IMG/VR virus record: IMGVR_UViG_3300046507_000667
Location: 124,001 to 188,000 of that record
Strand: one strand, 5' to 3'
Length of the DNA stretch: 64,000 nt
Shown: piece by piece, positions 22,010 to 62,398 of the stretch
How the letters are laid out: each line of letters opens with the position of its first letter
Numbering within the stretch: the first letter of the stretch is position 1
Program-made: the position numbers and the translations under genes
The notes under the pieces: model-generated
Told to the model about the DNA's origin: nothing
Databases searched by the model: none
The model's input: the letters and a program-made list of their open reading frames with translations, nothing else

Positions 22010-22041
22010 ATGCTTTCCTTTTAAAGTCATTGTACTTTTGT

Positions 22042-24148: not shown

Positions 24149-25228
24149 TTAGTACTTAATCATAACAGGGAATGCAAGATTCTTAGGTACGTTCTGTGAA
24201 CCACCAGAAGCAGCAACATATACTACGTGATTATGTTGACCTGAAGCAGCTTGTCCAAGATTATGAGAATGAGCACCATCACCATAGATTGTAACATTGT
24301 GAGCATGACCACCTGCCCATGATGTCATAAATGCATAGTTGTCATAGTCAGACTTATTAGTACCCCATTGGTTTGGACCACTTGCTACACCAAATGGAGA
24401 AGCTGCATTTTCACCAAAGCCTGAATCATGTTGGTGATCGCCTACTCCACCAGCACTACCACTGTGTGTATGGTTATTTTGCCCATCAGTCCATGCACTA
24501 TGAGCATGTGAACCTTGAGCATCAGTACCACCACCATGATTATGTGAATAGAATGCTTGATCTTGCCATGAGCCTACGTTACGTGCTGGACCAACCGCAT
24601 TATTGTTGGTACCTGTAACAGTACAACGGATAAATTGACCACGACAATCTGGAAGATTGAATGTAGTTGATCCATCACCTGCACCATACATTGTACCAAT
24701 TAATGCAAAAAGTTTAGCATAAGTGGCTCGATTTACTGCTTGACCATTACAATATAACCATCCATCTGGAGCAGTTTTACCAGCATAAAACATCACCATT
24801 CCAGGAGTAATAGTAGATGATAATCTAGCCATTACCCATGCTGTAGTTGGAATCAGAGTACTATTATCACTAGGAGAAATAACCTGATTAGGATCTACAG
24901 TAGGAATACCAGTAAACTTAGGACTATCAATATTTGCTTTATTTGCAGGATTAAAATTACCTGCAGTCCAAACTACATCATTATTTACATAAAGTTGTTT
25001 GGTATTAAAGTCATAATGATAACCACCTTGAGTAGCATCTTGCCAACCGGCACCATTACTATCTTGATAATATTGTGGTGCTGGATTGAAAGGTACAATT
25101 ACTGCATTTGATAATTTATAATAACCGGTATAGTTATCTGTCTTATCAAAGAAGATCTCTCCAACTTGTACATCAGCATGGTTAGATGCAGCCGCCAAGA
25201 ATGGAGTAATAATAACACGTTCTGTCAT
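24149..25228 (-). CDS. Tail fibre with collar domain and HxH-rich tip (paralog 3)
   Basis: GWLYCNG..YAKLF..GAGDGSTTFNLPD collar motif; repeated HxH. Confidence 0.85.
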   Translation of the reverse strand: MTERVIITPFLAAASNHADVQVGEIFFDKTDNYTGYYKLSNAVIVPFNPAPQYYQDSNGAGWQDATQGGYHYDFNTKQLYVNNDVVWTAGNFNPANKANIDSPKFTGIPTVDPNQVISPSDNSTLIPTTAWVMARLSSTITPGMVMFYAGKTAPDGWLYCNGQAVNRATYAKLFALIGTMYGAGDGSTTFNLPDCRGQFIRCTVTGTNNNAVGPARNVGSWQDQAFYSHNHGGGTDAQGSHAHSAWTDGQNNHTHSGSAGGVGDHQHDSGFGENAASPFGVASGPNQWGTNKSDYDNYAFMTSWAGGHAHNVTIYGDGAHSHNLGQAASGQHNHVVYVAASGGSQNVPKNLAFPVMIKY

Positions 25229-25237
25229 TGTAACTCC

Positions 25238-26323
25238 TTAAGCTTTAATGCAGCACAGTAGTGCCATATTATATGGACGACTTTCATTTACACCTGCTGC
25301 GACAGCATTTCCATAGATAGATACATTGTGAGCATGATTACCTGCATCACCTAATCCAACATTGTGAGCATGATTACCTGCACCATTTAAACCAATACTA
25401 TGGGTATGTCCACCTGCAGCGCCAGTCCAAATCCATCCATCATCAGTATCTGATTTAGCTGAACCAAGATTATTCATTGATGGACGAATTGGAGAGTTAC
25501 CCCAAGGACCGGCACTATCTTTTTCACCCCATGCACTATCATGCTGGTGGTCACCTACACCATCGGTCCATCCATTATGAGCATGATAACCTTGTGTATC
25601 GGCATAGACAGCATGGCTATGATATGCTTGTTGATCTGAGCTACCATTGTGACTGTGTGAAATATATCCATCTGGTTGGTAAGAACCAAAACCACGGCTT
25701 GGATCAACACCACGACCATCATCCCAAGCTCTAGGAAAAATAGACCGCATATCTGGAATATTAAAGGTAGTAAATCCATCACCTGCACCATACGTTGTGC
25801 CAATCACATTAAAGAGATTGACGTAATTTGTACGGTTCAGTGCGCTACCATTAAGTTTTAACCAGCCTTGTGGCGGTACTGAACCCATGAAGAACATGAT
25901 TGACCCTGTAGGGAAAATCTTGTTTAGATTGGTTGTAATCCATGCTGTATTAGGAATTGTTTTATCATTGCTATTAATATCTGGAGTAGGTACTGTAGGA
26001 ATACCAGTAAATGTCTGTCCAGACACATTAGCTTTTTTAGTAGGATCGAAGGTAGATGCAGACCATGCAGCATCATTATTTACATAGAGTTTATGTGTTG
26101 AAAACTCATAGTAAAAACCTTGTCCTGATGCATCTTTCATTCCTGCACCACTGCTAGACTCATAAAAGTTCTTAGCTGCAGTGAAAGGAAGTACAGCGCC
26201 AGTAGGACTTAGATAGTATCCATACCCTGTAATTGGATCAAAAAAGATTTCACCTTTAGATACCTTTGTTACATTAGTAGGATCATCCGTTACTGGAAAA
26301 TAAGAAACACGATTCTTTGCCAT
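25238..26323 (-). CDS. Tail fibre with collar domain and HxH-rich tip (paralog 2)
   Basis: Same architecture; RAWDDGRGVD, ESRPYNMAL. Confidence 0.85.
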   Translation of the reverse strand: MAKNRVSYFPVTDDPTNVTKVSKGEIFFDPITGYGYYLSPTGAVLPFTAAKNFYESSSGAGMKDASGQGFYYEFSTHKLYVNNDAAWSASTFDPTKKANVSGQTFTGIPTVPTPDINSNDKTIPNTAWITTNLNKIFPTGSIMFFMGSVPPQGWLKLNGSALNRTNYVNLFNVIGTTYGAGDGFTTFNIPDMRSIFPRAWDDGRGVDPSRGFGSYQPDGYISHSHNGSSDQQAYHSHAVYADTQGYHAHNGWTDGVGDHQHDSAWGEKDSAGPWGNSPIRPSMNNLGSAKSDTDDGWIWTGAAGGHTHSIGLNGAGNHAHNVGLGDAGNHAHNVSIYGNAVAAGVNESRPYNMALLCCIKA

Positions 26324-26332
26324 AGAAGTCCT

Positions 26333-27421
26333 TTAATACTTAACAAAAGGTCTAAAAGCAATATTTACAGGTCTAAATTCTTCAGCACCTTGATAATCTA
26401 ATGCTACATTATGGGCATGATTACCTACTGCTGCAACTGTAATATTGTGACCATGAATACCTTGTGCATCAGTACCAATATTATGACTATGACCACCTGC
26501 GCCACTTGTCAAAAATGCATAGTTATCAAAGTCATCACTATTTGTACCTAAATGGGTATTACTTCCATCATAATAACCAAAGCGAGCATATGACTGATCA
26601 CGTTCACCCCAAGGATTAACGTGTTGATGTTGACCTTGGAAATCAGTAGTTCCACCATGACCATGCCAACCTTGAGTATCAGTCCATGTAGAGTGATTAT
26701 GTTGACCTGCAGCAGCCATTGATGCTATATGAGTATGTGAGATAATAGCTTGTGCTTGGAAGGTATTTAAAGCACGTCCAGCATCAACACCACGACCATC
26801 ATCCCAACCACGAATGAAGTATCCACCAGCATTAGGAAGATTGAATGTAGTCGTTCCATCACCTGCACCAAAACCAGTACCAATCATTGCAAATAATGTT
26901 GCATATTGAGTACGACTTACTGCTTGGCCATTCATCAGCAACCAGCCATCAATATTATTAGCTGGAGTTGCACTCCATAATACTGTACCTGTGGCAACTG
27001 CTGAACTAACTCTTGAATTTACCCATGAAGTATTTGGAATTGTACCATCTGCACTGTTAATTGATGGAGTGGGTACCCTACCATTACTTAAAACTGGACT
27101 ATTCAGATTTGCTTTAAGGCTAGGATTAAAATTACCTGCAGTCCATACTAAATCACCACTAAATGTACCATCTGCATTTTCTTTACCTTGTAGATAAAGC
27201 TGTTTGTCTGCAAAATGGTAATATATCGAATTTGTACCATCATCGAATCCAGCATCTTTAGATGTCTGAATCCAATGTGGCGCTGACGTAAATGCTACAA
27301 CCTTACCACCATTAGTTAGATAATAACCTCGTCCATTCGTATCAAAGAAGATTTCACCTGGCTTTGCTTGAGTTGGAGTTGGCGTATCAATTAATGGCTT
27401 ATAAATAAGCGTTCTATTCAT
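26333..27421 (-). CDS. Tail fibre with collar domain and HxH-rich tip (paralog 1)
   Basis: Same architecture; RGWDDGRGVD, EFRPVNIAF. Confidence 0.85.
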   Translation of the reverse strand: MNRTLIYKPLIDTPTPTQAKPGEIFFDTNGRGYYLTNGGKVVAFTSAPHWIQTSKDAGFDDGTNSIYYHFADKQLYLQGKENADGTFSGDLVWTAGNFNPSLKANLNSPVLSNGRVPTPSINSADGTIPNTSWVNSRVSSAVATGTVLWSATPANNIDGWLLMNGQAVSRTQYATLFAMIGTGFGAGDGTTTFNLPNAGGYFIRGWDDGRGVDAGRALNTFQAQAIISHTHIASMAAAGQHNHSTWTDTQGWHGHGGTTDFQGQHQHVNPWGERDQSYARFGYYDGSNTHLGTNSDDFDNYAFLTSGAGGHSHNIGTDAQGIHGHNITVAAVGNHAHNVALDYQGAEEFRPVNIAFRPFVKY

Positions 27422-29687: not shown

Positions 29688-32600
29688 TTAGTTAATCCAG
29701 AGACGTTGACCATTACTGTTATTTCTTGAGATAGGAATAATACTACAGACAATACCTGTTGCTACATCAGGAATAACGAGAAAGCCATAACGACCTTGTG
29801 AATCTTGGAAATACTGTACTTTACTTGGATCAAGACCCATTTCAGCTACATAGTTCTTAGCAACAGCCAAACTACCAAGTCCAGTAGTCTTTGCATCAAT
29901 ATTATAAGTTACAATAGATGTATCATATACCATATATTGTAAGAAATTAGCAATAGTCTTATCCACTGGACGACGTGAATAGGCTTTACTAATATCAATC
30001 TTGTATACTGTATTAGAAGACTTTAGACCATATGTAGGTGAAATTGCAAAGAACTTAGTTATTCCTCTTACCATAAAGGTAGGATTCTGTACAAATACTT
30101 TAGCTTGACCTGCTTGCTGATAGGTCATATCAGTATAAATAAATACAGCGCTTCTTGGTGGAGCAGTCTCTCTGTACACTCCTTCCATATGAATATCAGG
30201 ACGTATTACGACTGTTACATTTTGCCATAGGTTCAATGCAAAGTCTTGTGTACGTTGAGCATATGCTGAATCTACTTGCTGTTGACTACCATAAAGACTG
30301 TAATTATACTGTGCAAGTATATTATAGGAATTACTATCTGTACTAGATATACCATAATTAGCCGTGGCTACATTAATATTGGTAGGCTTAAGGCTAGTCA
30401 TACTATTTGTATAACTATATGAGCCATTAATACTTAATGTATTATAACTCATATTAAATGAAGGTCGATTAAAATCTCCATTATTAATAGGTATAAAGAC
30501 ACTATTTACACCAATTTTAACTGTAGCTACATTATATATAAACCTATCACCATAGCTAATAAAATATGGATCATGTGCTAAATGCACCTGATATCCTGTC
30601 ATATTGTACCACTTATCATATGAATATGCAGAATTAACTGCACTCAGGATATATCCAAAAGCTACAGCTTTTTTGATAGTTGATACATTGTAAATATAAT
30701 TTGCTTGAGTTAAATAGCTTGGCGCAGTATTTTGTACACCAATACTATAACCGCTATTAACCATTTGCATATTTAAGTTAGATGTATTTCCATAAGCAAC
30801 TCCAGCATAATACATAACTTCAAATACAACTGAATTATATGTATTAGATGTAGCTAGAATATTTGGTCTACTTAATGGATAACCATCTACTGTAGCAGCT
30901 ATTACTTTATTGATACCACTATCAAATTTATTAGCATCAATAGACTCAATATGTGTATCAATACCAAGATAACCATTTACTATACTAGATTGTAAATCAG
31001 TTCGTGTTACATCATATGTATTACCATAGACTGTCAATGTTGTTCGTCTTGGATCTGGTAATTCATAATTAACTGATTGTAGTTGAGTCGAATCATGTAC
31101 TAATATGGTTTGGTCCATACTAAATACTGGACGATCCAATACATCTGGAATTGGCTGATCTTGAGATAATACTGTTGTAGAATCCTTTAATTGATAATCA
31201 TAGTACTGATCTGGTTGAGTCCATCGACGAGTTACTAATGCATTATCAAAGAATGCAACTACTGAATCCTGAGTTGAACCTACACCTTGGACAATTTCAG
31301 TTGTTTCAGGTAATTTTGTAGGTTGTGAGTTTAGCATATAGATATTATCTTCTAATTGCTGTTCAACCTCATACTTAACTACACCCTGAATAGGAATTGG
31401 TAAAGCTTGTAGTGTTACAATATGATTACCATACGCATCGTCAATATAATGGTATGATCGAGTTTGAGCCATCATCTGCATTAGATAACGGATATCAATT
31501 GTATGACCATTACCTACTGTACCAGTATCAATGAAGTCAGCATCAGTACCAGTACCATTCTTATCAATAGCAAACTGAAGAATACCCGGTTCTTTTGTAG
31601 TTAATGTACAAGTAAACCCTTCAGTCATACCAGTAATAGTCTGTGAGTCAGTCTCAATCAAAGTACCTGGAAATACATCAGTTGCTGAAGGTAATGTAAT
31701 TGGATTTGGTACTAAATTTGGTATAGAACGGAATACAAATGTTATTGGCTCAAATTCACTTAAAAGTTGGAGCACCCTTGAGTCGTAGTAATTAGTAAAC
31801 GCTGGACATGTAATACTAAGAACTGCGCCGTTTTCGAGGTACCCTGACGTAAACGCTTGACCATTATATTGAACCGTAAAACCATCGATATTATCAAATT
31901 GCACAAACTGTGCTCGTGCAAAGCTTAATGTATACGAAATAGTTTTAGCTGTGTTTAAAGGAATATCAAGAGTCTGTACTACTACACCAACTTTTGGTTG
32001 ATAAACTAAAAATGGTGGAGTAATATCAGTATATAGTGATGTGATATAGAATTCTTTATTCAATGCTGTAGAAGCATATGCAAAGTTGACATCTGGCGCA
32101 GATTTAAGTACACCATTATCAAAATATTCATTATCTGAAAGTGATGCAATATATTCATCACTATTATCTGATGATACACCTGTTGCTAAGAATTTCGTTT
32201 CATATTCAATAGTGTAAGTATAATCAAGATTATTGAATGTAATTACACGGTTATTATATGCATCAACTACCCATACTTTAGAAGCAATAGTAGTATCAAT
32301 TTGATTATCTGATGCAATAGAAGTAAATACACTATTAGCTGTAGCAAATCTTGTTGTAAGATTGCCACTGAGCCAAGTATAAATACCTTTGTTATTAGTA
32401 ACCCAAATGACATCTTTAATATCAGTAAAGATAGCAGTTGGATTTAAATTAGTCATTGGATATGAATGAACTAATGAAATTACAGTACTAACGGCACTAT
32501 ATACATTAATCTTATCATCATATGCTACAATAATCTGACTTTGCTGATTAGATGTTGCATATCTAGCATTTGCTGGAATTGCAAATGCTGCAGCATTATT

Positions 32601-33188
32601 CAAAGAAAAATCAGCATTAACTGGAATAATACTGTTTTCAGTTACAATATAGTCATATGCTACAGCTGTATCATCCTGAGTCCATAATGGGGTATAGACT
32701 GATGCAATAGGCATCGATGTAAGTGTAGCTTTTTTGACTTCATTTGTAGCACTGAAAAACCACACATCTTTCTTTACATAGTCAAAAACTGTTGTAACGT
32801 CAGATGGTGTAAATGTTTGTGTAGGTGTATATGGAGTCTCAATGACTGCAGCTGTATCAGTATCAATACTGATAAACTTTCCATATGAAGTACCTGTCAT
32901 TTGACGAAGCTTTGAGGCATCATCAAGGTAATAATAACGTCCTGCTGCAGGTGGAGTTACAATACACCAGTCAAAAGTCTTTCCAAGATACGATACTGGA
33001 ATAGTCTTACTTGTTGTAGTACTGGTAGAGATCGTAAACGAATCATTTTGTTTGACATTGATGTCAGTATTTGGCTGATACGTTGTCCCATTGTAAGTAA
33101 CTGTAGCATTAACGTTTAATACCCCTGATAAATCGGCAGTCACTGTTGTAGAAACAGTACCACTGCCATAAGTAACTGGAATATACAT
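29688..33188 (-). CDS. Large beta-rich virion/tail protein
   Basis: 1166 aa; propeller-like N-half (VWVVDAYNNRVI), Y/N/S/T-rich C-half. Confidence 0.7.
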   Translation of the reverse strand: MYIPVTYGSGTVSTTVTADLSGVLNVNATVTYNGTTYQPNTDINVKQNDSFTISTSTTTSKTIPVSYLGKTFDWCIVTPPAAGRYYYLDDASKLRQMTGTSYGKFISIDTDTAAVIETPYTPTQTFTPSDVTTVFDYVKKDVWFFSATNEVKKATLTSMPIASVYTPLWTQDDTAVAYDYIVTENSIIPVNADFSLNNAAAFAIPANARYATSNQQSQIIVAYDDKINVYSAVSTVISLVHSYPMTNLNPTAIFTDIKDVIWVTNNKGIYTWLSGNLTTRFATANSVFTSIASDNQIDTTIASKVWVVDAYNNRVITFNNLDYTYTIEYETKFLATGVSSDNSDEYIASLSDNEYFDNGVLKSAPDVNFAYASTALNKEFYITSLYTDITPPFLVYQPKVGVVVQTLDIPLNTAKTISYTLSFARAQFVQFDNIDGFTVQYNGQAFTSGYLENGAVLSITCPAFTNYYDSRVLQLLSEFEPITFVFRSIPNLVPNPITLPSATDVFPGTLIETDSQTITGMTEGFTCTLTTKEPGILQFAIDKNGTGTDADFIDTGTVGNGHTIDIRYLMQMMAQTRSYHYIDDAYGNHIVTLQALPIPIQGVVKYEVEQQLEDNIYMLNSQPTKLPETTEIVQGVGSTQDSVVAFFDNALVTRRWTQPDQYYDYQLKDSTTVLSQDQPIPDVLDRPVFSMDQTILVHDSTQLQSVNYELPDPRRTTLTVYGNTYDVTRTDLQSSIVNGYLGIDTHIESIDANKFDSGINKVIAATVDGYPLSRPNILATSNTYNSVVFEVMYYAGVAYGNTSNLNMQMVNSGYSIGVQNTAPSYLTQANYIYNVSTIKKAVAFGYILSAVNSAYSYDKWYNMTGYQVHLAHDPYFISYGDRFIYNVATVKIGVNSVFIPINNGDFNRPSFNMSYNTLSINGSYSYTNSMTSLKPTNINVATANYGISSTDSNSYNILAQYNYSLYGSQQQVDSAYAQRTQDFALNLWQNVTVVIRPDIHMEGVYRETAPPRSAVFIYTDMTYQQAGQAKVFVQNPTFMVRGITKFFAISPTYGLKSSNTVYKIDISKAYSRRPVDKTIANFLQYMVYDTSIVTYNIDAKTTGLGSLAVAKNYVAEMGLDPSKVQYFQDSQGRYGFLVIPDVATGIVCSIIPISRNNSNGQRLWIN

Positions 33189-33316: not shown

Positions 33317-34630
33317 CTAGGTAGTAAAACCTACTTCAAGGTTTGCTAAATCTGCCGCTCCAAATAATGTACCATCTTTACGAGCAGTAAATAAACCATT
33401 CATAGGATAGGCGGAACCTACTGGAACTGAATTAGGTGCAAAAGCAGTATCGATAGTTGTATTTGGATTTGAACTATTATAAGTACTAGCAGATAGACTC
33501 ATAGCTGAGTCACTAGAATTAAAGGAAGTAGCATTTACACCAATTCCAAAAATATTTTTTGGTACTTTTGAAAATGGAAATTTATAAGTATCTTTAATTC
33601 CAATAGTCGTTGCTGATACATATTCAGTGGCAGACATAGCTTCATAATAGTTCAATCTACCTGCATCAAAACGACTAAAATTAGAATTACTTCCATTGGC
33701 ATTTGGTGATACTCTACTAATATACTGCGGACCAATAGGAAATTGCATATTTGGATCAGCTGTACCAGTACTATAGATGATTAAATCATCCAACCAGAAT
33801 CCGCCACCCTTGGTATATCCATTCCAAGGACTACCAAATGCTACATATGGATAAGATTGAGCAGTAGTTGAGCCAGGATTACCTAATCCTTCATCAACAG
33901 GACCACCAAATTCCATATTACCATCAATATATGTTATTGAATATGATCGATGATATATTGTACTTGCTTGAGTCCATGTATATTGAAAACCAAGCATCTC
34001 AATCCAATGCCATTTATTGTCATTCAACTGAGTAGTTCCAGTCACTAATGGCTGAGTATAGATTGAATTAAAGCAAGGATTAGCAAAAACAATACTACCC
34101 TTATTATAATAAATATCCATCCAGCCAAGACTATCTGTGGATGACGATGCCATAGCTGCAAGAGAAGCTGGTCTTGTCATAAATCGGCAATAAGCAACAC
34201 CATTACCATACCACACATTAGGATCAAATCTAACCCAGAAACCAATAGCGGTTGTTATATTAACTGAAGGAGTTAATAAGCTTGGATCTGGTGCTGCAGA
34301 TAAGGTACCGAAATTTTTTCTATTACTCAATGCATTGCCAATTGGAGAAAATCCAACACAAGACATAAGAGGAAAATAGAGACTTGACGGACTAGATGGA
34401 ATTGCAGGATTTTGCCTATCTACTAAAGGTTTAACTGTCGTACTAATACCAATTGTCCATGTCGATGGAGTGCTAGAATTAGCTCTAGATCCACTATCAT
34501 ATACAGTAGCTGTATTATAACTAAATGCATTAAGTGCAGATGCTGCATTTGTAAATACATTACTAGCTGTTAATGCTGTAGCATGGGCTAAATTTGGATA
34601 ATCAAAACCTTCATAACGAAGGACAGCCAT
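33317..34630 (-). CDS. LamG/concanavalin-like adhesin paralog D
   Basis: YEGFDYP, GFWVR, DNKWHWIE, WLDDL, FPIG and terminal EVG. Confidence 0.75.
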   Translation of the reverse strand: MAVLRYEGFDYPNLAHATALTASNVFTNAASALNAFSYNTATVYDSGSRANSSTPSTWTIGISTTVKPLVDRQNPAIPSSPSSLYFPLMSCVGFSPIGNALSNRKNFGTLSAAPDPSLLTPSVNITTAIGFWVRFDPNVWYGNGVAYCRFMTRPASLAAMASSSTDSLGWMDIYYNKGSIVFANPCFNSIYTQPLVTGTTQLNDNKWHWIEMLGFQYTWTQASTIYHRSYSITYIDGNMEFGGPVDEGLGNPGSTTAQSYPYVAFGSPWNGYTKGGGFWLDDLIIYSTGTADPNMQFPIGPQYISRVSPNANGSNSNFSRFDAGRLNYYEAMSATEYVSATTIGIKDTYKFPFSKVPKNIFGIGVNATSFNSSDSAMSLSASTYNSSNPNTTIDTAFAPNSVPVGSAYPMNGLFTARKDGTLFGAADLANLEVGFTT

Positions 34631-34638
34631 AAATCCTC

Positions 34639-34905
34639 CTATGAGAGATTTTTAATTGCTTTTTTTGGACGTGAAATATTAGGCTTAGTTGCAGCAGAAT
34701 AAATAATATCATATGTAACATTATTTACTTGTAAGCCCTTTGCAAAACTACAAATGAAGTCAAAATACATATTGTTTATCGTAATTCGACGATCATCAAC
34801 ATTTGCCACAAAATCATATGACATATTATCAAATGTGATTTTGCGGTCATCAATATTTGTTATAAAGTCATAAGAAGTATTATCGAAGCCAAATTGATTA
34901 GCCAT
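34639..34905 (-). CDS. Small repeat protein B (four ~18-aa beta-strand repeats plus RPKKAIKNLS tail)
   Basis: TAAGGA RBS; FDNxSYDFxxNxDDR repeats. Confidence 0.8.
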   Translation of the reverse strand: MANQFGFDNTSYDFITNIDDRKITFDNMSYDFVANVDDRRITINNMYFDFICSFAKGLQVNNVTYDIIYSAATKPNISRPKKAIKNLS

Positions 34906-34914
34906 ATTATTTCC

Positions 34915-36243
34915 TTATGACTTATATATGCCAAATTCCATTTGACCTGTTGCTACATAGTTAGCTGGAATGAATGCAGTTTTTGCAGCATCACCTTCAG
35001 TATAAGTATCAATTAATGTTGTTATATTAGTAAATGATAATGTATTACTTAATGTAATTGCAGTAGTTGAACTCTTTAAATTATTAAAAGCCGTTCCCTG
35101 AGAATCATTTCTATTAGCAGCATAAATAGATGTATTAGACATCGTATTAATTGCTGAAATATTAATAGCAACTGCAAAAACTATATTAGGTGTAAAATCT
35201 AATGGTTGATGATGGTATGTTTCAGTTACCCCACTAGTAGTTGTAGATACATATGTTGCAGTATCAGTACTTGATGCAGCCTGCCAATTAGCTAAACTAC
35301 CATTACTAGATACCATTGAATTTTCAGAAGCTCGCATTGAAGGACCACTAGGAAATCTACGCTGAATTCTAGTACGTCCAATAGGCCAATATACTCTAGA
35401 ATCAATAGTCTTACCATGATAAAATAAAGTCATATCATCAATCCAAAAACCAGATGCATAACCAGTTGCCATAGTATTGGTAGTACCAAGTGATAGATAT
35501 GGATTAGGTGTTGCCACTGTATTTGGATTAACTAAGTTTGCTGATTGTATTGCTGCAATATCGACAAAATAGTCTACATATAGGCCGCTATATGTATACT
35601 GCCACATATTTGAACCATTGACATAATATTGCTGACTAATATATATTTCAACCCAATGCCAATTTCCATCTAAAATATTAGTAATACCTGTACCAACTCC
35701 AGCAGGAGCAAGAGAATGAACTCCTACACTACTAAATACTACTGTACCGTCCGCTTTCTTAGTAAGTGCTAATGCAGTAATTGCACCACCGCCAGCAGCA
35801 CCTCTTGCATTTATAGGACTATTTCCTTTAGATAAAAGCCTATATGTAGCAGCCGTAGCACCATTCCAAATAGCAGGATTTAGTTTAAACCAAAATCCAT
35901 AACTCCAACTAAATAGAGCAGCTGAAGGAGTTCCATTATTAGTACCGATAGCCACACTGGGCCAAAGTGTCATTGGTATAGCAGAAATACTTAATGCTGC
36001 TCCTTCTGGAAAATATACACTACATGGCGCAGTAGAAAATGGTTTTTCATTACGTTCTACTGTAGGTGCAGTAGCACTAATTCCAACTTGAGCAGGAGTG
36101 ATTGGAGTTTGATTGTTCGCTTGAATACTATTACCCCATAGAGTAGACATGCCATTGGTAAAAGCATTGTTTGCTGTCAATGCAGTACCATGTGGCATAG
36201 TACTTGCAGGATATTCAAATCCTTCATATAAGTATACACTCAT
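34915..36243 (-). CDS. LamG/concanavalin-like adhesin paralog C
   Basis: YEGFEYP, GFWFK, DGNWHWVE, WIDDM, WPIG and terminal EFG. Confidence 0.75.
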   Translation of the reverse strand: MSVYLYEGFEYPASTMPHGTALTANNAFTNGMSTLWGNSIQANNQTPITPAQVGISATAPTVERNEKPFSTAPCSVYFPEGAALSISAIPMTLWPSVAIGTNNGTPSAALFSWSYGFWFKLNPAIWNGATAATYRLLSKGNSPINARGAAGGGAITALALTKKADGTVVFSSVGVHSLAPAGVGTGITNILDGNWHWVEIYISQQYYVNGSNMWQYTYSGLYVDYFVDIAAIQSANLVNPNTVATPNPYLSLGTTNTMATGYASGFWIDDMTLFYHGKTIDSRVYWPIGRTRIQRRFPSGPSMRASENSMVSSNGSLANWQAASSTDTATYVSTTTSGVTETYHHQPLDFTPNIVFAVAINISAINTMSNTSIYAANRNDSQGTAFNNLKSSTTAITLSNTLSFTNITTLIDTYTEGDAAKTAFIPANYVATGQMEFGIYKS

Positions 36244-36253
36244 ATTAATTCCT

Positions 36254-36628
36254 TTAAGAAAGATTTTTAACAGCTTTCTTAGGCCGTAAAAAATTCACTT
36301 TTTGTTTTACTGAATGAATGACATCGATATAAAGATCGACAACATCTACTTCAGCACTGCGCATAGTACAAATAACATCTAAAGACATATCAAAAGCCTT
36401 TAGTGCTCTATCATTTGTACCCGCTACAGTATCAGTATATAAATCATAAACATTTGTAATTCTGTCATTAGTGCCACCTACAACATCTAATGAAGCGCTA
36501 TATACTCTTAGTTGTCTATCATTGGTACCAGCGATAGTATCTGCATATATATCATATATATTCATAACTCTATCATTGGTACCAGCGACAACATCTAAGC
36601 TAGCATTATACCAATTTAGGCTAGCCAT
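36254..36628 (-). CDS. Small repeat protein A (six ~18-aa beta-strand repeats plus RPKKAVKNLS tail)
   Basis: Four GTNDR-ended repeats plus two degenerate ones. Confidence 0.8.
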   Translation of the reverse strand: MASLNWYNASLDVVAGTNDRVMNIYDIYADTIAGTNDRQLRVYSASLDVVGGTNDRITNVYDLYTDTVAGTNDRALKAFDMSLDVICTMRSAEVDVVDLYIDVIHSVKQKVNFLRPKKAVKNLS

Positions 36629-36637
36629 AATATACCC

Positions 36638-37999
36638 TTACGGAGTCACATATTTAAAGCCAATTTCATACTTTGACCATTTAGTAGGATCAATATCATA
36701 ACGGGTAGTACCACCAGCATAAAGTTGATCAAAAATAAATGGGCTATATGTATAACCAGCATATGCAATATTGGTAGTCTGTGAAGTGTTTGATAAATTA
36801 GCTGTAACGTTAGCTAAAGTACTTGCACCTGCAGCAGCATCATCTGATGCTTTGACCATAGGGTATATTGCTTGTTGAGTCATAGTATTCGATGCTACAA
36901 GGACATATCCTACACCATTAATCTTATCAGGTATCCAATCTAATGGAGCAAATTTATATGTATCAACAGCACTTTGTGTAGTAGACACTGAATTACCAGT
37001 AGTTGTACCTTGTACTAATTGATAATTTGCCTTAGTATTATCACTTGGAGTAAATTGAGCATTGGAACCTGCAGCAATAGCACGTTTACGTGAAATTCGT
37101 TGACGCCCTAATGGAAATACTGTTTTCTGGCCAGCCGCATTAAAGTATACAATAATATCATCTAGAAAAATAGACATATTAGAAGAACCTGCTGCAGCTT
37201 CATTTCTAAAATAATTATAATATGTACCAGTAATTGCACTTGAAGACCATTGTACAATACCAGGAGTTATTTCAGAATAATCTATATATAAACGATAATA
37301 TTGCGCTGTAAGAGATGTAGAAAAGCCAGCTACAAGTTCAATCCAATGCCACTGATTATCAAATAAATTTATATTTGGTGTAGATATAGCTGGTGCTGCA
37401 TTAGTTCCACCAGCATATGCAGTTTGTATATAACCGTCAGTTCCACCAGAATTTCTTGATCCGCCATATGTAGGTGAAGATATTGCTAATAAAGTAGCTG
37501 GACCAGCATCTGAAGCTGTATTAAGTGCACTTGCATTTTTAATTAGTGGATAAGTAGTAAACGATGTAGTTTGCGCGGTTGATGAATATTTATTCCAACC
37601 AGTATCATACTTAATCCAAAAACCAAACCCAAAAGACATATTTGCTGAACTAGCTATAAAGTTATTATTATATGGACCAGTCGATGGTGATGCCCAAAAT
37701 GGATATACACTTAATAATGCTTGAGGAGCTAATTCTAAGCAAGATGATCCAGGATATAAAGCCTGTGATCTATTTACTTTGCAGTTAACTGTCTTTATAC
37801 TTGCTGCAAATGAATTTTCTGGACGTACATTTGGAGTATTCCCACCAGCACCAACTGGAATATTTGTACCAGTTGGAGTAACTGCATTAAAATTATTAAA
37901 TGGATGAAGATAGCTAGTCCAAACATTTGCCGATGTTAGTAATGTACCATCTGCTAAAGAACTAGGATAATCAAATCCTTCATATGCAACAATACTCAT
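36638..37999 (-). CDS. LamG/concanavalin-like adhesin paralog B
   Basis: YEGFDYP, GFWIK, DNQWHWIE, FLDDI, FPLG and terminal EIG. Confidence 0.75.
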   Translation of the reverse strand: MSIVAYEGFDYPSSLADGTLLTSANVWTSYLHPFNNFNAVTPTGTNIPVGAGGNTPNVRPENSFAASIKTVNCKVNRSQALYPGSSCLELAPQALLSVYPFWASPSTGPYNNNFIASSANMSFGFGFWIKYDTGWNKYSSTAQTTSFTTYPLIKNASALNTASDAGPATLLAISSPTYGGSRNSGGTDGYIQTAYAGGTNAAPAISTPNINLFDNQWHWIELVAGFSTSLTAQYYRLYIDYSEITPGIVQWSSSAITGTYYNYFRNEAAAGSSNMSIFLDDIIVYFNAAGQKTVFPLGRQRISRKRAIAAGSNAQFTPSDNTKANYQLVQGTTTGNSVSTTQSAVDTYKFAPLDWIPDKINGVGYVLVASNTMTQQAIYPMVKASDDAAAGASTLANVTANLSNTSQTTNIAYAGYTYSPFIFDQLYAGGTTRYDIDPTKWSKYEIGFKYVTP

Positions 38000-38011
38000 T
38001 ATTATTCTCCT

Positions 38012-39352
38012 TTAGATAGTAATACCAAATTCAGCATTAATATAATCTATTGGTCTAAGCTGTGTCATAATTGGAACTGCTACACCGCCATTTGAGCCAT
38101 TAATACCAGTATAATATTGATCAAATAACATTGTAACACCAGTTATTGTATTCGTTGATAATGTAGCATAAACTACTTCATTATTTAGCCCATTAGCTGC
38201 AATAGTTGCATTATCATAATTATTATATAATCCCATTACAGTACCTGCTTGGAATAATGCACCGGCTGGAGGAATTAAAAAGGGCGAAATTTTTGTAGTA
38301 GCTAAAGTATTAGCCATAGCTACATTAAAACCATAACCAATAATTTTATCTGGATTAAATGGTAAAGGCTGAAATTTAAATCCTTCATATTTACCTGTAA
38401 CTGGAGTATTAAGATTATCTACTCCATTATTTTGAGTTACAGTCTGATATGGTGCTAGACCTGTATTACTATTTATAAAATCTTGCTTTGTACCATTAGT
38501 AATTGGTTTTGTTCTAAAAATTCTTTGGCGTCCAATAGGGAATACTGCAGGGCCATTATATTGGCCTGCAGCAGTGCTACCAGTAAGGGCATTATTATTA
38601 TTATAAAAAATTATATCATCTATAAAAATTGAAAAATTTGTAGCTGCATCATTAAAAAAATACTTTGCAAGATATGTATCAACAGTACCACCACTAGCAA
38701 AAGATCCAGATGTATATGGAAAATAATCTACATAGTGTTGATAGTATGTAGTATTTGTAGTAAATGACATTGCTACTTCAAACCAATGCCATCTATTATC
38801 AAACCATGTAGTTGGTGTAGCTGTAGTTGCTGTACTAAAGCTACTAGTAGTATTAGTACGATTGGTAATACTACCATCACCATTTACAGACATTTCACCT
38901 ACTTTTAATGCTGTATTATCTGTACCATTAACAATACCTCTAGCCATAAACCATACTTGGGCGCTTGAAGCTAAACTAGTGGCATTTGGACCAAATTTAA
39001 TCCAAAAACCCATACCTACCCGTCTTTGGTTAGCAGATCCATAGTTTGTACCACCATTTGGCTGTCCATTGAATGTAGCAGTTGTAGCATCTCGCCATAA
39101 ATTTGCAACTGAAAAACCTGCTCCTGGAGGAAGTTCAATACAAGTTCCACCAAATTGAGATTGTGAACGATTTACTAAGCAGCCCCATGAATATGAAACA
39201 GGCGATCCACGATTTGTACCTTGACCATAGTTACCAGTTCCTACTCCTAAAGCACTATAGCTATTAGTCTGAATGGTTGAATTGGTAAGTAAAGTACCTT
39301 CAGCCATTGAATCAGGATAATCAAATCCTTCGTAACAAAATAAACTACCCAT
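38012..39352 (-). CDS. LamG/concanavalin-like adhesin paralog A
   Basis: YEGFDYP, GFWIK, DNRWHWFE, FIDDI, FPIG and terminal EFG. Confidence 0.75.
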   Translation of the reverse strand: MGSLFCYEGFDYPDSMAEGTLLTNSTIQTNSYSALGVGTGNYGQGTNRGSPVSYSWGCLVNRSQSQFGGTCIELPPGAGFSVANLWRDATTATFNGQPNGGTNYGSANQRRVGMGFWIKFGPNATSLASSAQVWFMARGIVNGTDNTALKVGEMSVNGDGSITNRTNTTSSFSTATTATPTTWFDNRWHWFEVAMSFTTNTTYYQHYVDYFPYTSGSFASGGTVDTYLAKYFFNDAATNFSIFIDDIIFYNNNNALTGSTAAGQYNGPAVFPIGRQRIFRTKPITNGTKQDFINSNTGLAPYQTVTQNNGVDNLNTPVTGKYEGFKFQPLPFNPDKIIGYGFNVAMANTLATTKISPFLIPPAGALFQAGTVMGLYNNYDNATIAANGLNNEVVYATLSTNTITGVTMLFDQYYTGINGSNGGVAVPIMTQLRPIDYINAEFGITI

Positions 39353-39451: not shown

Positions 39452-40795
39452 TTAAGAAGTACCGCCAACCTGAACAAGTGTTAGCATACGAAGTAGTGTG
39501 TTATTCGAGCCTGAAGCTTGCATTGCACGATAAACACGAGCTACTGTTTCACCATATAGAGTTAGAGGAATTTCTGACTCTTGAGCAACGACATCAGCTG
39601 CAGTATATGCAATGAGGTCTAGCTCATGGGTATAAGCATAACGGTTTGTGTTAAGACGGTTAGGAATAGTAATTAGATACTTATTACCTGTAGCAATACC
39701 AACTTGCTGATTTGAGTTAATAATTGCTGAAGAAATTGGGCTATCTAGGTTAGCACGGACGCTTGGTGTTGGAACTGAAACGTCATCTTCATTAACTACA
39801 AACTTGTATAGAGCAGCAATAGGCTTAGTAGTTGTTGATGCTTGGTTAAGATCTGATTGTGAAACAATTGTAAGAGCGCCAACAGCAGCAATTGTATCAT
39901 TAACAGCCTTTGTAACCATAGCTTGTACATTATCTTTATAATATACTTGCTGTACTGTAGCATTATTAACGTTAGTAGTACTATTAACGTTAGTTACTGT
40001 GCCAGTATAGGCTGTTTGAGCAGGATTAGCTGTCATGATTGGATTAACAATGCTTGTAATCGATGTTAGTGGCATCGATTGATTAAGCTTTGTTGCCCAA
40101 TTGCCGTTAAGCTGTGTAATTAGTGTATCAATTGTACCTTGCTCATAGATAGCATCGATACGATTGTTTGGTGCATATACACAGAATACTGGTGAATGTG
40201 AATCTGTAAGTGGAGCACCAGTCTTATTATCTACTGGAGATTGAACAGTAACCCATGAGAACTGTGGAGTTTTTTCTTGTGCATCACCCCATACCCATAG
40301 ATAGAAACCATGATCTGATAGACCGATTTGATATGACATCGGGTTACCAGTAAGATCGCTGTACTGTGACTTAGCACGTACAATGAACATGCTACCTGGA
40401 TCCATATCAACAGAAGCTGTTGAAGCATCATCCCATTTACGACCAAGCATACCGGCAATATTAGATGCACGGAAAGCGGCTGTACCGGGATATGAAGCTA
40501 CAGTACCAGTATTGCTAATCTGTGTTGGGTTAGCAATTGCTACGCGTACTGATTCGTTCTTTTGAACTTCAATGTAAATACGATACTTTTGCTTTGTATT
40601 TACAGGGTTAACTGCAGCAGTTGATTCTAGAACAGCAATAAAGCTACCATCAGTACCGGGAGAAATAGCTGTGCTTGGGAATACTTTTGTAAAGTATGCG
40701 GTTGTATCGCTTGTAAGATCATTAATGATGGCAAGCATCAGTGATGATAGTGTAGTAAGCGCTGAACCAGTCTTTACTTTAATCGTAGTTGCCAT
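39452..40795 (-). CDS. Virion structural protein, tail-associated
   Basis: 447 aa, own late promoter and downstream hairpin, tail-module context. Confidence 0.65.
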   Translation of the reverse strand: MATTIKVKTGSALTTLSSLMLAIINDLTSDTTAYFTKVFPSTAISPGTDGSFIAVLESTAAVNPVNTKQKYRIYIEVQKNESVRVAIANPTQISNTGTVASYPGTAAFRASNIAGMLGRKWDDASTASVDMDPGSMFIVRAKSQYSDLTGNPMSYQIGLSDHGFYLWVWGDAQEKTPQFSWVTVQSPVDNKTGAPLTDSHSPVFCVYAPNNRIDAIYEQGTIDTLITQLNGNWATKLNQSMPLTSITSIVNPIMTANPAQTAYTGTVTNVNSTTNVNNATVQQVYYKDNVQAMVTKAVNDTIAAVGALTIVSQSDLNQASTTTKPIAALYKFVVNEDDVSVPTPSVRANLDSPISSAIINSNQQVGIATGNKYLITIPNRLNTNRYAYTHELDLIAYTAADVVAQESEIPLTLYGETVARVYRAMQASGSNNTLLRMLTLVQVGGTS

Positions 40796-42120: not shown

Positions 42121-42672
42121 TTAGATACTATATTTACCCCAAATATTACCAATCCATTTTGATGTGATAGCATCCCATCTAATTTCAATGATTGTTGGAG
42201 AAGTATCAAGAGTAATTGAACCTGAAGCTAAATTTAGGTTATCGATACTAAAAGTAGTACCACCACTAGCAGTTAGACGAAGGAAATAACTTGTATTATA
42301 TCCTACTGGAACTGATCCAGTGATACTAAAAGTGATATCACCTGTTGCATTACATATAATTTCAGTACAATCAGTGAAATCTAAACTAACTGCACCAACT
42401 ACATCACCTAAATTAATTACCTTGCCAAAGCTAGTCTTTGAAGCAAGAGTACCATCTAATGATTGAGCACCACTTTTCCCTAGTTTAGCAGCCAAGTAAG
42501 TTTGTAAATCAGTAGGTGTTACATTTAACTGAATTACATTCTCACCTGTTTCGTCTAACGTATAAATTGCTTTATCTGCTAGATTGACCGCTAAAACTCC
42601 TTCAGATAAAGATCCTACAGCAGGAATTCTACCCGGAACAATAGATCTTAGGATTTTAACGGTTGCTGTCAT
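42121..42672 (-). CDS. Short fibre/connector protein
   Basis: LRSIVPGRIP..EGVLAVNLADKAIYT resembles the T4 gp36/gp37 N-terminal module. Confidence 0.65.
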   Translation of the reverse strand: MTATVKILRSIVPGRIPAVGSLSEGVLAVNLADKAIYTLDETGENVIQLNVTPTDLQTYLAAKLGKSGAQSLDGTLASKTSFGKVINLGDVVGAVSLDFTDCTEIICNATGDITFSITGSVPVGYNTSYFLRLTASGGTTFSIDNLNLASGSITLDTSPTIIEIRWDAITSKWIGNIWGKYSI

Positions 42673-43352
42673 TAGAATGTACCTGAATCAACTGTATCTA
42701 CAGAAAGATTACCTGTACCATCTACTGCTAAACCTGAACCTGAAGCAACTTTAACACCGCCTAGAGTTGTATCTGTAGCTGCTTGAAGTAATGGTGCAAC
42801 ACTATTATCAATGTAATCCCATTTTGTACCATCTGATACCAGCCAATCACCAATAGCCCATTTTGAATGGCCATCAATAGCTGTTGTACCAGCTACACCT
42901 ACAATGTAATATTGACCTTTATTATCAGCTGCTGCTGCTGGAATTGCAGGAGTATTTGTAGATGCATCCCAAGTTGTTTGATAAACAACGGCACCTACTA
43001 GTGATGCAGGAATCTGTGCTGAAGTAAGTTTACCAGAACCATCTAGTGTTGCAACTCCATTATTAGCACCTTTAGCACTATTAGGAATAACACTTGAAAG
43101 ATCAGCAGAAAGTACACCTGTACCTGAATCAATAATTAGATTTGCACCAACCTTAACCCCACCAAGAACTGTATCACTTGCTGTCGGTAAAGAATAAGCT
43201 GGATCAATACCAAGTCCAATTACATCACCATTGCTATCCTTAGTAAAGATTTTACCATCTGCTAAGTTAATTGCAATTTGACCTTCAGCAACTTCAGCTG
43301 CTGAAGGAATGCGGCCTGGAACACTAGTACGTAAATGTTGATAGACTGCCAT
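42672..43352 (-). CDS. Short fibre/connector protein
   Basis: LRTSVPGRIP..EGQIAINLADGKIFTK; LGGVKV fibre repeats; GVATLDGSGKL. Confidence 0.7.
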   Translation of the reverse strand: MAVYQHLRTSVPGRIPSAAEVAEGQIAINLADGKIFTKDSNGDVIGLGIDPAYSLPTASDTVLGGVKVGANLIIDSGTGVLSADLSSVIPNSAKGANNGVATLDGSGKLTSAQIPASLVGAVVYQTTWDASTNTPAIPAAAADNKGQYYIVGVAGTTAIDGHSKWAIGDWLVSDGTKWDYIDNSVAPLLQAATDTTLGGVKVASGSGLAVDGTGNLSVDTVDSGTF

Positions 43353-48346: not shown

Positions 48347-49317
48347 TTATTCTTCTTCGCCGATTTCATCAGCTAGATTAATAGTCTTTACTCGGTTACG
48401 TGGTGCTGCAGATGGTTTCTTTTTAATTCCACCACCATTAATATAACCCTGTGAATCTTCATTCAATTCATCTTCTTCATCCTGATCTTCCATCACGAAT
48501 GAGCCAAGGGTATCAGCAATCTTATCTACAGATGCTGACTCTTTTAATTCATAATCTTCAACTAGACGCATACCATTATCAGGCTCAAATGGATGTGCAA
48601 AATAACCCGCTGTAATACGAGTTTGATTCTTATCTGCACGATTCTTTAAGTCTTTAAAAGTAAGCCACATACTCTTTGTACTTACAGCATATTCCCGATT
48701 AATACCGGCAACAAAGTCTGCATTTTCAAGAAGCATATTGGATTCAGAAATCATAGCTTGAGTAATTTTATTACCCACGTCCATTTTCTTTTTACCGTCT
48801 GCTGATGTCTCTTCAAGAACACGATAAGCTTCACGGTTAAGCTGATTAGCTGTAATCACTGGAATCTTACGTGCTTTCGAAAGAGTACTAAATTCATTAA
48901 TAGCTTCACCAATATCAATACGTAGATCACCTGTAGGAAAATCTGGCTTAATACGTTTAATATAGTCATGAATAATAATCTTTACTTCTACATTTTCTTC
49001 AGATTCAACTTCATTGATAATACCTTCAATATCACCAGTGGAAATTGAATTCTTTGGACGGTATTTAATCTGTAAGTCCCAACGTCCATCCCGTAGCTTT
49101 TCCCTTACCATATTGGCAAGGATTTCATTAGTACCTAGTGCTTTACCATCATCATTCAGCCCTTTAACATATGAAATGGTACGTTCAAGGGTTTCATGAT
49201 TATCATTTTCTTGTGATAGATATAAAACACAGGGTCTTTTTGATCTATCATTGCATACAATATCATCATTATATTTACAAGCCCAAAATGCTACATTAAG
49301 CAATAGGCCGGATTTCC
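48347..49317 (-). CDS. dnaB: DnaB-like replicative helicase, exon 2
   Basis: LYLSQEN, IIHDY, ITANQLNR, ISES and KNR motifs; spliced product 565 aa. Confidence 0.88.
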
Positions 49318-50482
49318 CATTTATGTTATCGGTGATCGTTAATCACCTTCTTATGTTTTCACATAAGATCAGACTATATCTTATTGAGAAATAAAATATT
49401 TCTCAATATCTATATTTCCAGAATCACTTGATTCCGTACTCTCACTATGGAGATAGTCGTTGAACATTATTTCTAATAATCTGCCAAGATTATCGAATTC
49501 CCAATAGGGAATTCTAACTAAACCAATTCCGTTATCAATACAAAATTTATTCTTATATTGATCAATTTCCTGCCTTTTTATAAATTCGACCTTATGCTTT
49601 TCTAAATTTAAAAATGCTTCATAATGAAAGCGACCATCATACTCAATAAAGAAATAGCCTTCAGGTAAATCTATTTTAAAATCATATTTAATAAATTTAC
49701 TACGTGTATTTGGTGGATTATACTGTTCTGAAAAACTAATATTATGCTTAGTTAACCATTGTCGTATAAATTCTTCACCTTTAGAAGATATGCAATTTGG
49801 ACAGCGATTTCCCTTCACAATAAAGTTATTTGGTCTCATAGTAAAAATAGTATTACATTCTTTATGAATGAATTTCTTTTTATCATGAGTATTAGTATAT
49901 TCATCTATAAATTCATACTCATTATTAGTAATAGTACTAATTTGAGATTTAAATTCATCAGTAGAATACCTATAACTTCTATGTGAACATTTAGGACATC
50001 TAGTACCACCACCTAAAAAACCTTTTGGTGTAACTTCAAATTCATTCCCACAAATATGACGTAAAATTACTTTTTCATTATAATTTGTATAATTACTTAA
50101 GCATATATAGCTATTTATATGAGATATTTTTTCTTCAAAAGATTCTTTAGTAACTTTCATAAATCCAGCACAAAAAGGGCATCTAGTACCTTTTCGTTTA
50201 CTTGATCCTCTGAAGTCACCACGTTTAGCACTAAAAGTTCTTTTACAAACTTCATGTCTAAATTCAATAGGTGTATGATACTTTTTATATTCGGATAGCA
50301 CCGTATATTCATCGCCAACCAAATCACGAACTTCTAAGAGAAATTCTTTGTGAGTTGTTTGTCGTGGCATACATATCCCTTAAAATTTCTTGGCAGAGAT
50401 GAAATAATGCTGCTGATTGCCCTCGTCTTAATACGTTAGGGGTTTCCAGCAATTAATAGATTTTATAGTGAACTGAAAGTTA
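49318..50482 (-). mobile_element. Group I intron in dnaB (1165 nt)
   Basis: P AATTGCTGGAAA, Q AATCAGCAG, R GTTCAACGACTA, S AAGATATAGTCT; P1 GUGGAU/GUUCAC with U.G pair; terminal G; splicing restores GTSSGWKS. Confidence 0.9.
49381..50370 (-). CDS. Intron-encoded homing endonuclease (Zn-ribbon repeats plus Vsr-like/EDxHD nuclease)
   Basis: Three H..C...RCPxC repeats; YDF..IEYDGRFHY. Confidence 0.85.
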   Translation of the reverse strand: MPRQTTHKEFLLEVRDLVGDEYTVLSEYKKYHTPIEFRHEVCKRTFSAKRGDFRGSSKRKGTRCPFCAGFMKVTKESFEEKISHINSYICLSNYTNYNEKVILRHICGNEFEVTPKGFLGGGTRCPKCSHRSYRYSTDEFKSQISTITNNEYEFIDEYTNTHDKKKFIHKECNTIFTMRPNNFIVKGNRCPNCISSKGEEFIRQWLTKHNISFSEQYNPPNTRSKFIKYDFKIDLPEGYFFIEYDGRFHYEAFLNLEKHKVEFIKRQEIDQYKNKFCIDNGIGLVRIPYWEFDNLGRLLEIMFNDYLHSESTESSDSGNIDIEKYFISQ

Positions 50483-61577: not shown

Positions 61578-61620
61578 CATATGTTAACCCTAGTATCGTT
61601 ATTACTAAAGTATGTATGAT

Positions 61621-62364: not shown

Positions 62365-62386
62365 TACAATTCTCAGTAGTAGAAAC

Positions 62387-62398
62387 TAAGAATCTGTT
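62387..62398 (-). promoter_or_regulatory. Late promoter inside the intron, driving the endonuclease
   Basis: AACAGATTCTTA, 23 nt upstream of the HEG ATG. Confidence 0.65.

Follow-up and report, generated by a model that had tools for sequence, protein, structure and literature searches.

A widespread pairing of lectin-like phage tail proteins and small repeat-strand proteins, inferred to bind each other, in the tail gene cluster of an uncultured jumbo phage

Results

Organization of the six-gene block

When the 64,000-nucleotide window (positions 124,001 to 188,000 of IMG/VR record IMGVR_UViG_3300046507_000667) was analyzed, a tight block of six genes was found on the minus strand of this uncultured 249-kb jumbo myovirus. 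Four genes encode diverged paralogs of approximately 440 aa, P4 (38012..39352, 446 aa), P3 (36638..37999, 453 aa), P2 (34915..36243, 442 aa) and P1 (33317..34630, 437 aa), and two encode small proteins built of 18-aa repeats, S2 (36254..36628, 124 aa) and S1 (34639..34905, 88 aa). P4 is the first gene of the cluster and P1 the last, with S2 located between P3 and P2, and S1 between P2 and P1. All six ORFs have an AGGA-type ribosome-binding site and the gaps between genes are 8-12 nt. The block is bounded upstream by the tail sheath gene (39452..40795, minus strand; phrog_12249, E = 9e-74), whose product is 45 % identical to the PaBG sheath, and downstream by a gene for a 1166-aa homologue of PaBG gp224 (29688..33188, minus strand; BLASTP 29 % identity, E = 6e-65). 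In PaBG the gp224 gene directly follows the sheath gene, so the P/S cluster is an insertion.

The four paralogs are 25-35 % identical to each other, P4 being closest to P3 (35 %), and their invariant columns include Y-E-G-F-x-Y-P, G-F-W, D-x-x-W-H-W-x-E, D-D and P-x-G. All four end 3-6 residues after E(V/F/I)G. S2 contains six 18-aa units arranged as a 36-aa super-repeat, 3 x (A+B), followed by a basic tail, and Tandem Repeats Finder gave a 108-nt period with 79 % matches and a score of 265. Four canonical units ending in GTNDR occupy S2 residues 4-75 (36404..36619, minus strand) and alternate between type A (..YxASLDVV..) and type B (..YDxYxDT[IV]..). S1 contains four units and a basic tail. 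S1 and S2 are homologous (BLASTP E = 2e-13, 34 % identity) and share their C-terminal tail, RPKKAVKNLS in S2 (36257..36286, minus strand) and RPKKAIKNLS in S1 (34642..34671, minus strand). In the 10 tail codons, 6 differ synonymously and 1 non-synonymously, so the peptide itself is under purifying selection rather than recently copied. Moreover, an independent metagenome contig (L004) carries a P2 orthologue (P0005, 38 % identity) followed 13 nt later by an S1-like repeat ORF. These findings confirm what the initial annotation had observed: the four paralogs with their shared motifs and common ending, and the two interleaved repeat proteins with six and four units and a common tag, are all present.

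P1-P4 are distant members of the PHROG 2448 family with a predicted lectin-like fold

No Pfam or NCBIfam hit was found for P1-P4, including Laminin_G_3 (PF13385), against which the family member P0007 also remained below the gathering threshold (21.1 bits compared to a cut-off of 27.6). The only direct PHROG hit was a weak one, of P1 to phrog_2448 (E = 3.8e-4). In contrast, a profile of P1-P4 found 223 cluster representatives at E<=1e-3 and 62 at E<=1e-10. Of the ten hits scanned, seven, including five of the six at 357-370 aa, matched phrog_2448 at 1e-23 to 1e-31 over their full length. This family, catalogued with unknown function, includes phiCbK gp315, Brevundimonas phage Delta gp31 and AchV4 gp25/gp26/gp27, which the profile search linked to the paralogs at E down to 1e-23. 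They share the two-domain architecture, the family motifs (DGFDxY, GFWxK, WHWIE, DDxI, ...NAAEFG) and the position at the distal end of tail modules. The window paralogs differ in being approximately 90 aa longer, with long variable loop insertions, and in occurring as four tandem copies.

The AlphaFold2 (AF2) model of P2 had a pTM of 0.78 and a pLDDT of 70.5. Residues 1-~291 of the model form a ConA-like jelly roll, matched by VIA-align with Z of 13.6-10.4 to GH131, PL-14, Emp47p, ERGIC-53 and peanut lectin, and Foldseek returned hits to legume lectins. A conserved beta domain follows at the C-terminus. Whole-length BFVD matches to phiCbK-like, Brevundimonas Delta and AchV4 proteins were found with TM up to 0.72. 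For P3, ESM Atlas structure matches to viral proteins of ~330 aa covered residues 1-451, and matches to Laminin_G_3 clusters were also found. Two family members, AchV4_0025 and AchV4_0026, were detected by LC-MS/MS in CsCl-purified virions of Achromobacter phage AchV4 (PMC7996906).

The repeat protein S2 has no confident predicted fold alone

The AF2 monomer model of S2 gave a pLDDT of 45.8 and a pTM of 0.28, i.e., no confident fold. The ESM Atlas model of S2 (pLDDT 0.55) resembled pentapeptide-repeat, bactofilin and beta-helix models at TM 0.8, which would be consistent with a small beta-solenoid that folds on its own. However, this is a low-confidence model, and in related modules (see below) the unit spacing ranges from 15 to 24 residues and 62 % of the linkers contain Pro, in contrast to the near-constant coil length of a solenoid. 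That S1 and S2 are decaying remnants of fibre genes with no role is opposed by the intact ORFs with ribosome-binding sites, the selection on the tail, the conserved orthologue on L004 and the presence of the free form in phiCbK, where the neighbouring LamG gene recurs across the Caulobacter phage records. Either of these readings is considered very unlikely.

Nucleotide and protein searches of the annotated phage collection with the cluster, P3 and S2 found nothing, and a word-indexed search of 5.8 billion proteins returned only the query itself for P3 and nothing for S2. PDB sequence searches with the P and S profiles, and with a repeat-bearing fibre, gave nothing useful. Two metagenome scans were empty, and a viral scan with the S alignment found only the source contig.

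Repeat modules of the same design are encoded next to LamG-family genes in unrelated phages

To determine whether the pairing occurs elsewhere, loci carrying LamG-family genes (given L numbers here) were scanned for tandem units of the same kind, consisting of a 10-residue core almost free of Gly and Pro (generic consensus R-V-T-Q-x-x-V-E-V-L) and Gly/Pro-rich linkers. Iterating a 13-residue HMM of the unit lost sensitivity, and it was replaced with a hand-made position score calibrated on reversed decoys. Across all scanned ORFs, reversed decoys gave 1 chain of three or more units at score 9 compared to 33 real chains. At the permissive setting the score has an appreciable chance rate, about 10 of the 58 hits possibly being false, and therefore we rely on the strict figures. 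By the strict scan, repeat chains lie on the family strand in 42 of 79 loci, and 38 of those 42 lie within -1000 to +1600 nt of the family gene, most starting 27-72 nt after its stop codon. The scan also flagged window positions 51949-53208, which encode an Mre11/SbcD-type phosphoesterase and are a false positive. In the reverse search, starting from the repeat, one to three LamG-family ORFs were found immediately upstream in 8 of 8 testable tandem-repeat loci.

The module occurs as a free small protein (phiCbK gp316, and L003, L013, L018, L019, L034 and L074) or, more often, fused to the adjacent tail fibre or spike, at the N-terminus (L031, L036, L056 and L058, and L044, which also has a Peptidase_S74 domain) or the C-terminus (L005, Brevundimonas Delta, L047 and L086); internal modules were also found. 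Of the linkers, 86 % contain Gly or Pro, and spacing varies within single proteins. The cores are strand-like, with alternating hydrophobic residues and a near-invariant acidic residue. phiCbK gp316 matched phrog_13560, another family of unknown function, at E = 1e-46, and L013, L018, L047 and L077 matched it weakly. Like S1 and S2, the PHROG 13560 proteins are tiny, with 2-4 tandem strand units in which an acidic residue is followed by V-(L/I), and are encoded next to a LamG-family gene. S1 and S2, however, had no PHROG hit. Their unit is xYxxSLDVV plus an NDR turn rather than RVTQxxVEVL plus a Pro/Gly linker, they have 4-6 units, and their tail is basic instead of hydrophobic and Cys-containing. 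Their link to the generic module rests on shared period, core pattern, gene position and a MAFFT register, so convergence is not excluded.

Repeat number tracked paralog number only weakly (rho = 0.25, p = 0.06). Natural single chains fusing a LamG-family domain with the repeats were looked for, and none were found among 150 representatives. Literature searches for the motif, phiCbK gp315/gp316, Casjensviridae tail tips and LamG with tandem repeats found no description of the pairing. The view of the initial annotation that nothing of this kind is described in phages thus needs qualifying, since both families are catalogued as PHROGs and the pairing is widespread.

Discussion

The gene arrangement supports the proposal in the initial annotation that the repeat proteins and the LamG-like paralogs work together, but its specific mechanism remains hypothetical on present evidence, and its interpretation is only partly supported. 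We propose that the block is a receptor-binding cassette inserted into the tail module of a PaBG-like jumbo myovirus. In this view, P1-P4 would be virion proteins, each with a jelly roll with variable loops as the likely glycan-binding head. S1 and S2 would be free-standing versions of a portable tandem-strand module, which in most phages is fused to the tail fibre or spike encoded right after the LamG genes. Each 10-residue core would be a binding site for a LamG-family protein, probably through its conserved C-terminal domain, so that a carrier would display several lectin-like heads, and the last two degenerate units plus the basic tail of S1 and S2 would fix the adaptor to a common site on the tail. 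The genes, the repeats, the homology to the family, the gene linkage in both directions, the virion presence of family members in another phage and the selection on the tail were demonstrated here or in the cited data. In contrast, physical binding, the domain that binds, the stoichiometry, the addition of a beta-strand and the location on the virion are inferred. We hold this explanation to be about as likely as not. Gene linkage could reflect co-transfer within receptor-binding cassettes rather than contact, AchV4_0028, the repeat-bearing protein, is not in the AchV4 virion mass spectrometry table, and phiCbK gp315/gp316 are not flagged as virion-associated in the phiCbK record.

The initial annotation had suggested donor-strand complementation as in chaperone-usher pili, each repeat supplying the missing last strand of an adhesin C-terminal beta-sandwich. 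The strand-like cores separated by flexible linkers, the lack of an autonomous fold in the S2 model and the C-terminal strand N-A-A-E-F-G being the most conserved motif of the LamG family are consistent with a short strand completing or extending a sheet of another polypeptide. However, the P2 model contains its own C-terminal strand (residues 435-441; 10-residue block means 81 and 90) within the best-modelled domain, and the E-F-G strand is the family-wide C-terminal strand rather than a sign of a missing one. No PapD-like chaperone or usher genes were found among the neighbours by Pfam or PHROGs, and the cellular context is different. This strict form is considered unlikely. A broader form, also doubtful but not excluded, is that the cores form a portable docking code across sipho-, myo- and jumbo phages, each core recruiting one LamG-like adhesin by beta-strand addition to its conserved C-terminal domain and core variants, such as the A and B units of S2, specifying which paralog docks. 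A 124-aa adaptor could then assemble a defined hetero-multivalent lectin array on the tail.

Alternatively, the module may be a self-assembling trimeric shaft or anchor segment (for example beta-spiral-like) attaching its carrier to the virion, with the LamG proteins as independent receptor-binding proteins that merely travel in the same cassette. Most modules sit at the N-terminus of fibres or spikes, the usual virion-proximal end, one carrier has the Peptidase_S74 trimer chaperone, and a period of 15-20 residues with Gly/Pro turns recalls the shaft repeats of adenovirus and reovirus. A monomer prediction would fail for such a fold. In contrast, the module also occurs at C-termini, internally and as free proteins of 50-124 aa, which fits a portable docking element better than a virion anchor, and adjacency to LamG genes is near-obligate across siphoviruses, myoviruses and jumbo phages, whose baseplates differ. 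We regard this possibility as doubtful. It is less likely still that the LamG-family proteins are assembly factors or chaperones for the repeat-bearing proteins, which may stay attached afterwards. The two gene types are tightly coupled and always separate polypeptides among the 150 representatives, and in AchV4 two LamG proteins but not the repeat protein were detected in virions. Fibre chaperones, however, are usually encoded downstream of the fibre and act on its C-terminus, the paralogs differ mainly in jelly-roll loops, as expected for ligand-binding heads, and three or four diverged paralogs per genome are hard to explain for a chaperone.

Host recognition modules set phage host range, and this analysis links PHROG 2448, PHROG 13560 and the unannotated N-terminal repeats of many fibres and spikes into a single module that can be recognised from sequence alone. 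If the repeats are docking sites, this would be a simple, modular way to mount several lectin-like heads on one carrier, and it would improve the annotation of tail modules, including those of phiCbK and of Casjensviridae. By analogy, in the branched receptor-binding complexes of Ackermannviridae/CBA120 tailspikes, the K1-5/SP6 adaptor and G7C gp66-gp63.1, one carrier holds several different receptor-binding proteins, giving a multivalent or multi-specific tail. Those systems use folded N-terminal docking domains, while the candidate docking element here is a string of 10-residue linear cores. A lyase or hydrolase role for the paralogs, which is not excluded, was also considered because of fold matches to PL-14, PL-7 and GH16, but it was not adopted because the conserved WHWxE and DDxI motifs look like LamG_3 framework motifs.

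Genomic context of the six-gene block

The stretch examined is part of the IMG/VR contig UViG_3300046507_000667 (249,347 bp), whose tail sheath protein is about 45% identical to that of the Pseudomonas jumbo phage PaBG. On the minus strand, the transcription order was found to be baseplate-wedge-like and fibre-like genes, the sheath gene (39452-40795), the LamG-family paralogs P4 and P3, the small repeat protein S2, the paralog P2, the small repeat protein S1, the paralog P1, a gene for a 1166-aa protein, a tape-measure-like gene, and three collar-fibre paralogs. The 1166-aa protein is the homologue of PaBG gp224 (29% identity, E = 6e-65). In PaBG, the gp224 gene directly follows the sheath gene, and the six-gene P/S block is thus an insertion relative to PaBG. 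The three tandem tail-collar-fibre paralogs of approximately 360 aa (24149-27421, minus strand) carry 12-aa His-rich repeats near the C-terminus, for example GNHAHNVGLGDA. In addition, two short adjacent proteins of 183 and 226 aa (42121-43352, minus strand) share an N-terminal segment that matches the N-terminus of long-tail-fibre distal subunits.

Outside the tail genes, a DnaB-like replicative helicase (48347-51209, minus strand) appears split into two ORFs (50463-51209 and 48347-49303) by an HNH homing-endonuclease gene (49381-50370). The topoisomerase II large subunit (60507-63965, minus strand) is likewise in two pieces (62604-63965 and 60507-61580), separated by an HNH homing-endonuclease ORF (61621-62364). 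An Mre11/SbcD-type phosphoesterase with DIHIGH, GDLFEH and GHDH motifs (51949-53208, minus strand) and an SbcC-like ATPase (19247-22030, minus strand) are encoded about 30 kb apart.

The paralogs and the repeat proteins

The observation made in the initial annotation was confirmed, as every element described there, namely the four paralogs with their shared motifs and the two interleaved small proteins of 18-aa repeats ending in a common tag, is present. The paralogs are old duplicates that are 25-35% identical, with P3 and P4 being the closest pair. S2 consists of three copies of a 36-aa double unit (A+B). S1 and S2 share their last two degenerate units and the tail RPKKA(V/I)KNLS, in which six of the ten codons differ synonymously and one non-synonymously. 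This indicates that the tail is conserved as a peptide. Moreover, an unrelated 904-bp metagenome contig (L004) carries a P2 orthologue ending in GFGVGLYKG, and 13 nucleotides later an ORF starting with MANQ and containing the same 18-aa units.

No match to the paralogs was found in Pfam or NCBIfam. In contrast, a profile built from the four paralogs found 223 cluster representatives at E<=1e-3, mostly of 330-370 aa, and most of the hits that were scanned matched PHROG 2448, a family of no known function. The AlphaFold model of P2, which was based on an alignment of 71 sequences (pTM 0.78, pLDDT 70.5), has two parts. The N-terminal part, residues 1 to approximately 291, is predicted to be a ConA/LamG-type jelly roll, with Z scores of up to 13.6 against lectins, GH131 and alginate lyases. 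The C-terminal beta domain is better defined, and its last strand (residues 435-441) is modelled. Whole-length matches among predicted viral structures included proteins of phiCbK-like phages, Brevundimonas phage Delta, Achromobacter phage AchV4 and several enterobacterial siphoviruses. AchV4_0025, AchV4_0026 and AchV4_0027 are three tandem PHROG 2448 members, and AchV4_0025 and AchV4_0026 were detected in CsCl-purified virions by LC-MS/MS (PMC7996906). In phiCbK and Delta, the family gene sits at the distal end of the tail module.

Repeat modules are a widespread probable partner of the LamG family

Units of the same design were found beside family genes in other phages. In phiCbK, gp316 is a 69-aa protein encoded directly upstream of the family member gp315; it consists of three 17-18-aa units (VTQETVEVISTSPKPVRL) and is the type of PHROG 13560. 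In another locus with a family gene, L003, a 74-aa ORF with 20-aa units follows that gene. In locus L005 and in Brevundimonas phage Delta, the same units end the neighboring tail proteins of 731 aa and 460 aa, respectively. In 79 further IMG/VR loci carrying family members, the gene directly after the last family gene very often opens with 2-4 such units, for example MSVRLTRQYSDVLTSGGNGTTRLTRQYGEVLASGGDGKVRLTRQYVEVLTP, followed by a body of 200-740 aa. Some of the carrier bodies are recognizable fibres or spikes, with a Peptidase_S74 domain in locus L044, a discoidin domain in locus L077 and a glycine-rich fibre domain in Delta.

To determine the strength of this linkage, a strict scan for repeat chains was carried out, and chains were found in 42 of the 79 loci. 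All of them were on the family strand, and 38 of the 42 lay within -1000 to +1600 nt of the family gene. Across all scanned ORFs, reversed decoys gave 1 chain of three or more units at score 9 compared to 33 real chains. In the reverse direction, a scan of the viral collection for back-translated TRQYVEV(L/F) gave 10 loci, of which one was a lone chance match and one was cut off by the locus end. All 8 others, five of them on new contigs, had one to three LamG-family ORFs immediately upstream. No chain among 150 representatives was found to fuse the two parts.

Anatomy of the repeat module

Across 46 distinct modules the core is R-V-T-Q-Q-x-V-E-V-L, with 1.2% Gly and 0.3% Pro. In contrast, the linkers are 13% Gly and 10% Pro, and 86% of them contain one or the other. 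Spacing runs from 15 to 24 residues (mode 17) and is non-constant in 13 of 34 modules with three or more units. This looks like strand cores on flexible or turn linkers rather than a compact solenoid. AlphaFold2 gave no confident fold for S2 (pLDDT 45.8), although a low-confidence ESM Atlas model looks solenoid-like. The units of S1 and S2 (x-Y-x-x-S-L-D-V-V plus an NDR turn) fall into register with the generic cores in a MAFFT alignment, but they do not hit PHROG 13560, and homology with the generic module is therefore likely but not proven. A variant unit, AQFAQVL, is used by the repeat-bearing protein AchV4_0028 (19255-20991 of the AchV4 locus, L089), in which the otherwise near-invariant acidic residue is Gln; this protein also has further units near its C-terminus.

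Proposed role of the repeat module

The two-way, near-obligate adjacency spans siphoviruses, myoviruses and jumbo phages, the module appears free, N-terminal, C-terminal or internal, and the two parts are always separate polypeptides. Together, these findings are best explained by direct partnership, with the repeat module recruiting LamG-family proteins to a carrier. The gene linkage, the repeats, the conservation of the tail peptide and the presence of two family members in AchV4 virions come from the data, while binding between the two parts, recruitment to a carrier and anchoring by the tail are inferred without binding evidence. Evidence that weakens this view is that the AchV4 repeat protein is absent from the virion mass spectrometry table (PMC7996906), that phiCbK gp315 and gp316 are not flagged as virion-associated, and that the correlation between repeat number and paralog number is weak. 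The interpretation in the initial annotation, that each repeat donates a missing last strand to an adhesin so that one adaptor holds several heads, is only partly supported, since the partnership is favored by the gene linkage but the strict donor-strand idea is not supported by the P2 model, though it is not excluded. In the window the carrier would be reduced to a small adaptor, whose conserved tail would provide the anchor. By gene order, P4 and P3 precede S2, which has alternating A and B units, and P2 precedes S1. This suggests unit-type specificity, but that is speculation.

Both families are catalogued only as PHROGs of unknown function, and neither a curated name nor a paper describing the motif or the pairing was found in the database and literature searches. 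Functionally, the pairing would be a new variation on the already known theme of branched, adaptor-mediated receptor-binding complexes.

Variation at the ends of the repeat-bearing proteins

The free-standing small repeat proteins of other phages, in loci L003 (10676-10900), L018 (7017-7169), L019 (7055-7276) and L013 (7032-7247), end in short hydrophobic tails, three of them Cys-containing (IVMVCT, VVIIVCG, PVICVCT and ARVMIMP), whereas the tails of S1 and S2 are basic (RPKKAxKNLS). Many of the proteins with N-terminal repeats, encoded downstream of the family genes in loci L021, L028, L031, L033, L036, L039, L051, L055 and L058, share an unannotated C-terminal domain ending in DWEGRTW+G+I+NPD...FEFEGEL, for which no match was found in Pfam, PHROG or PDB.
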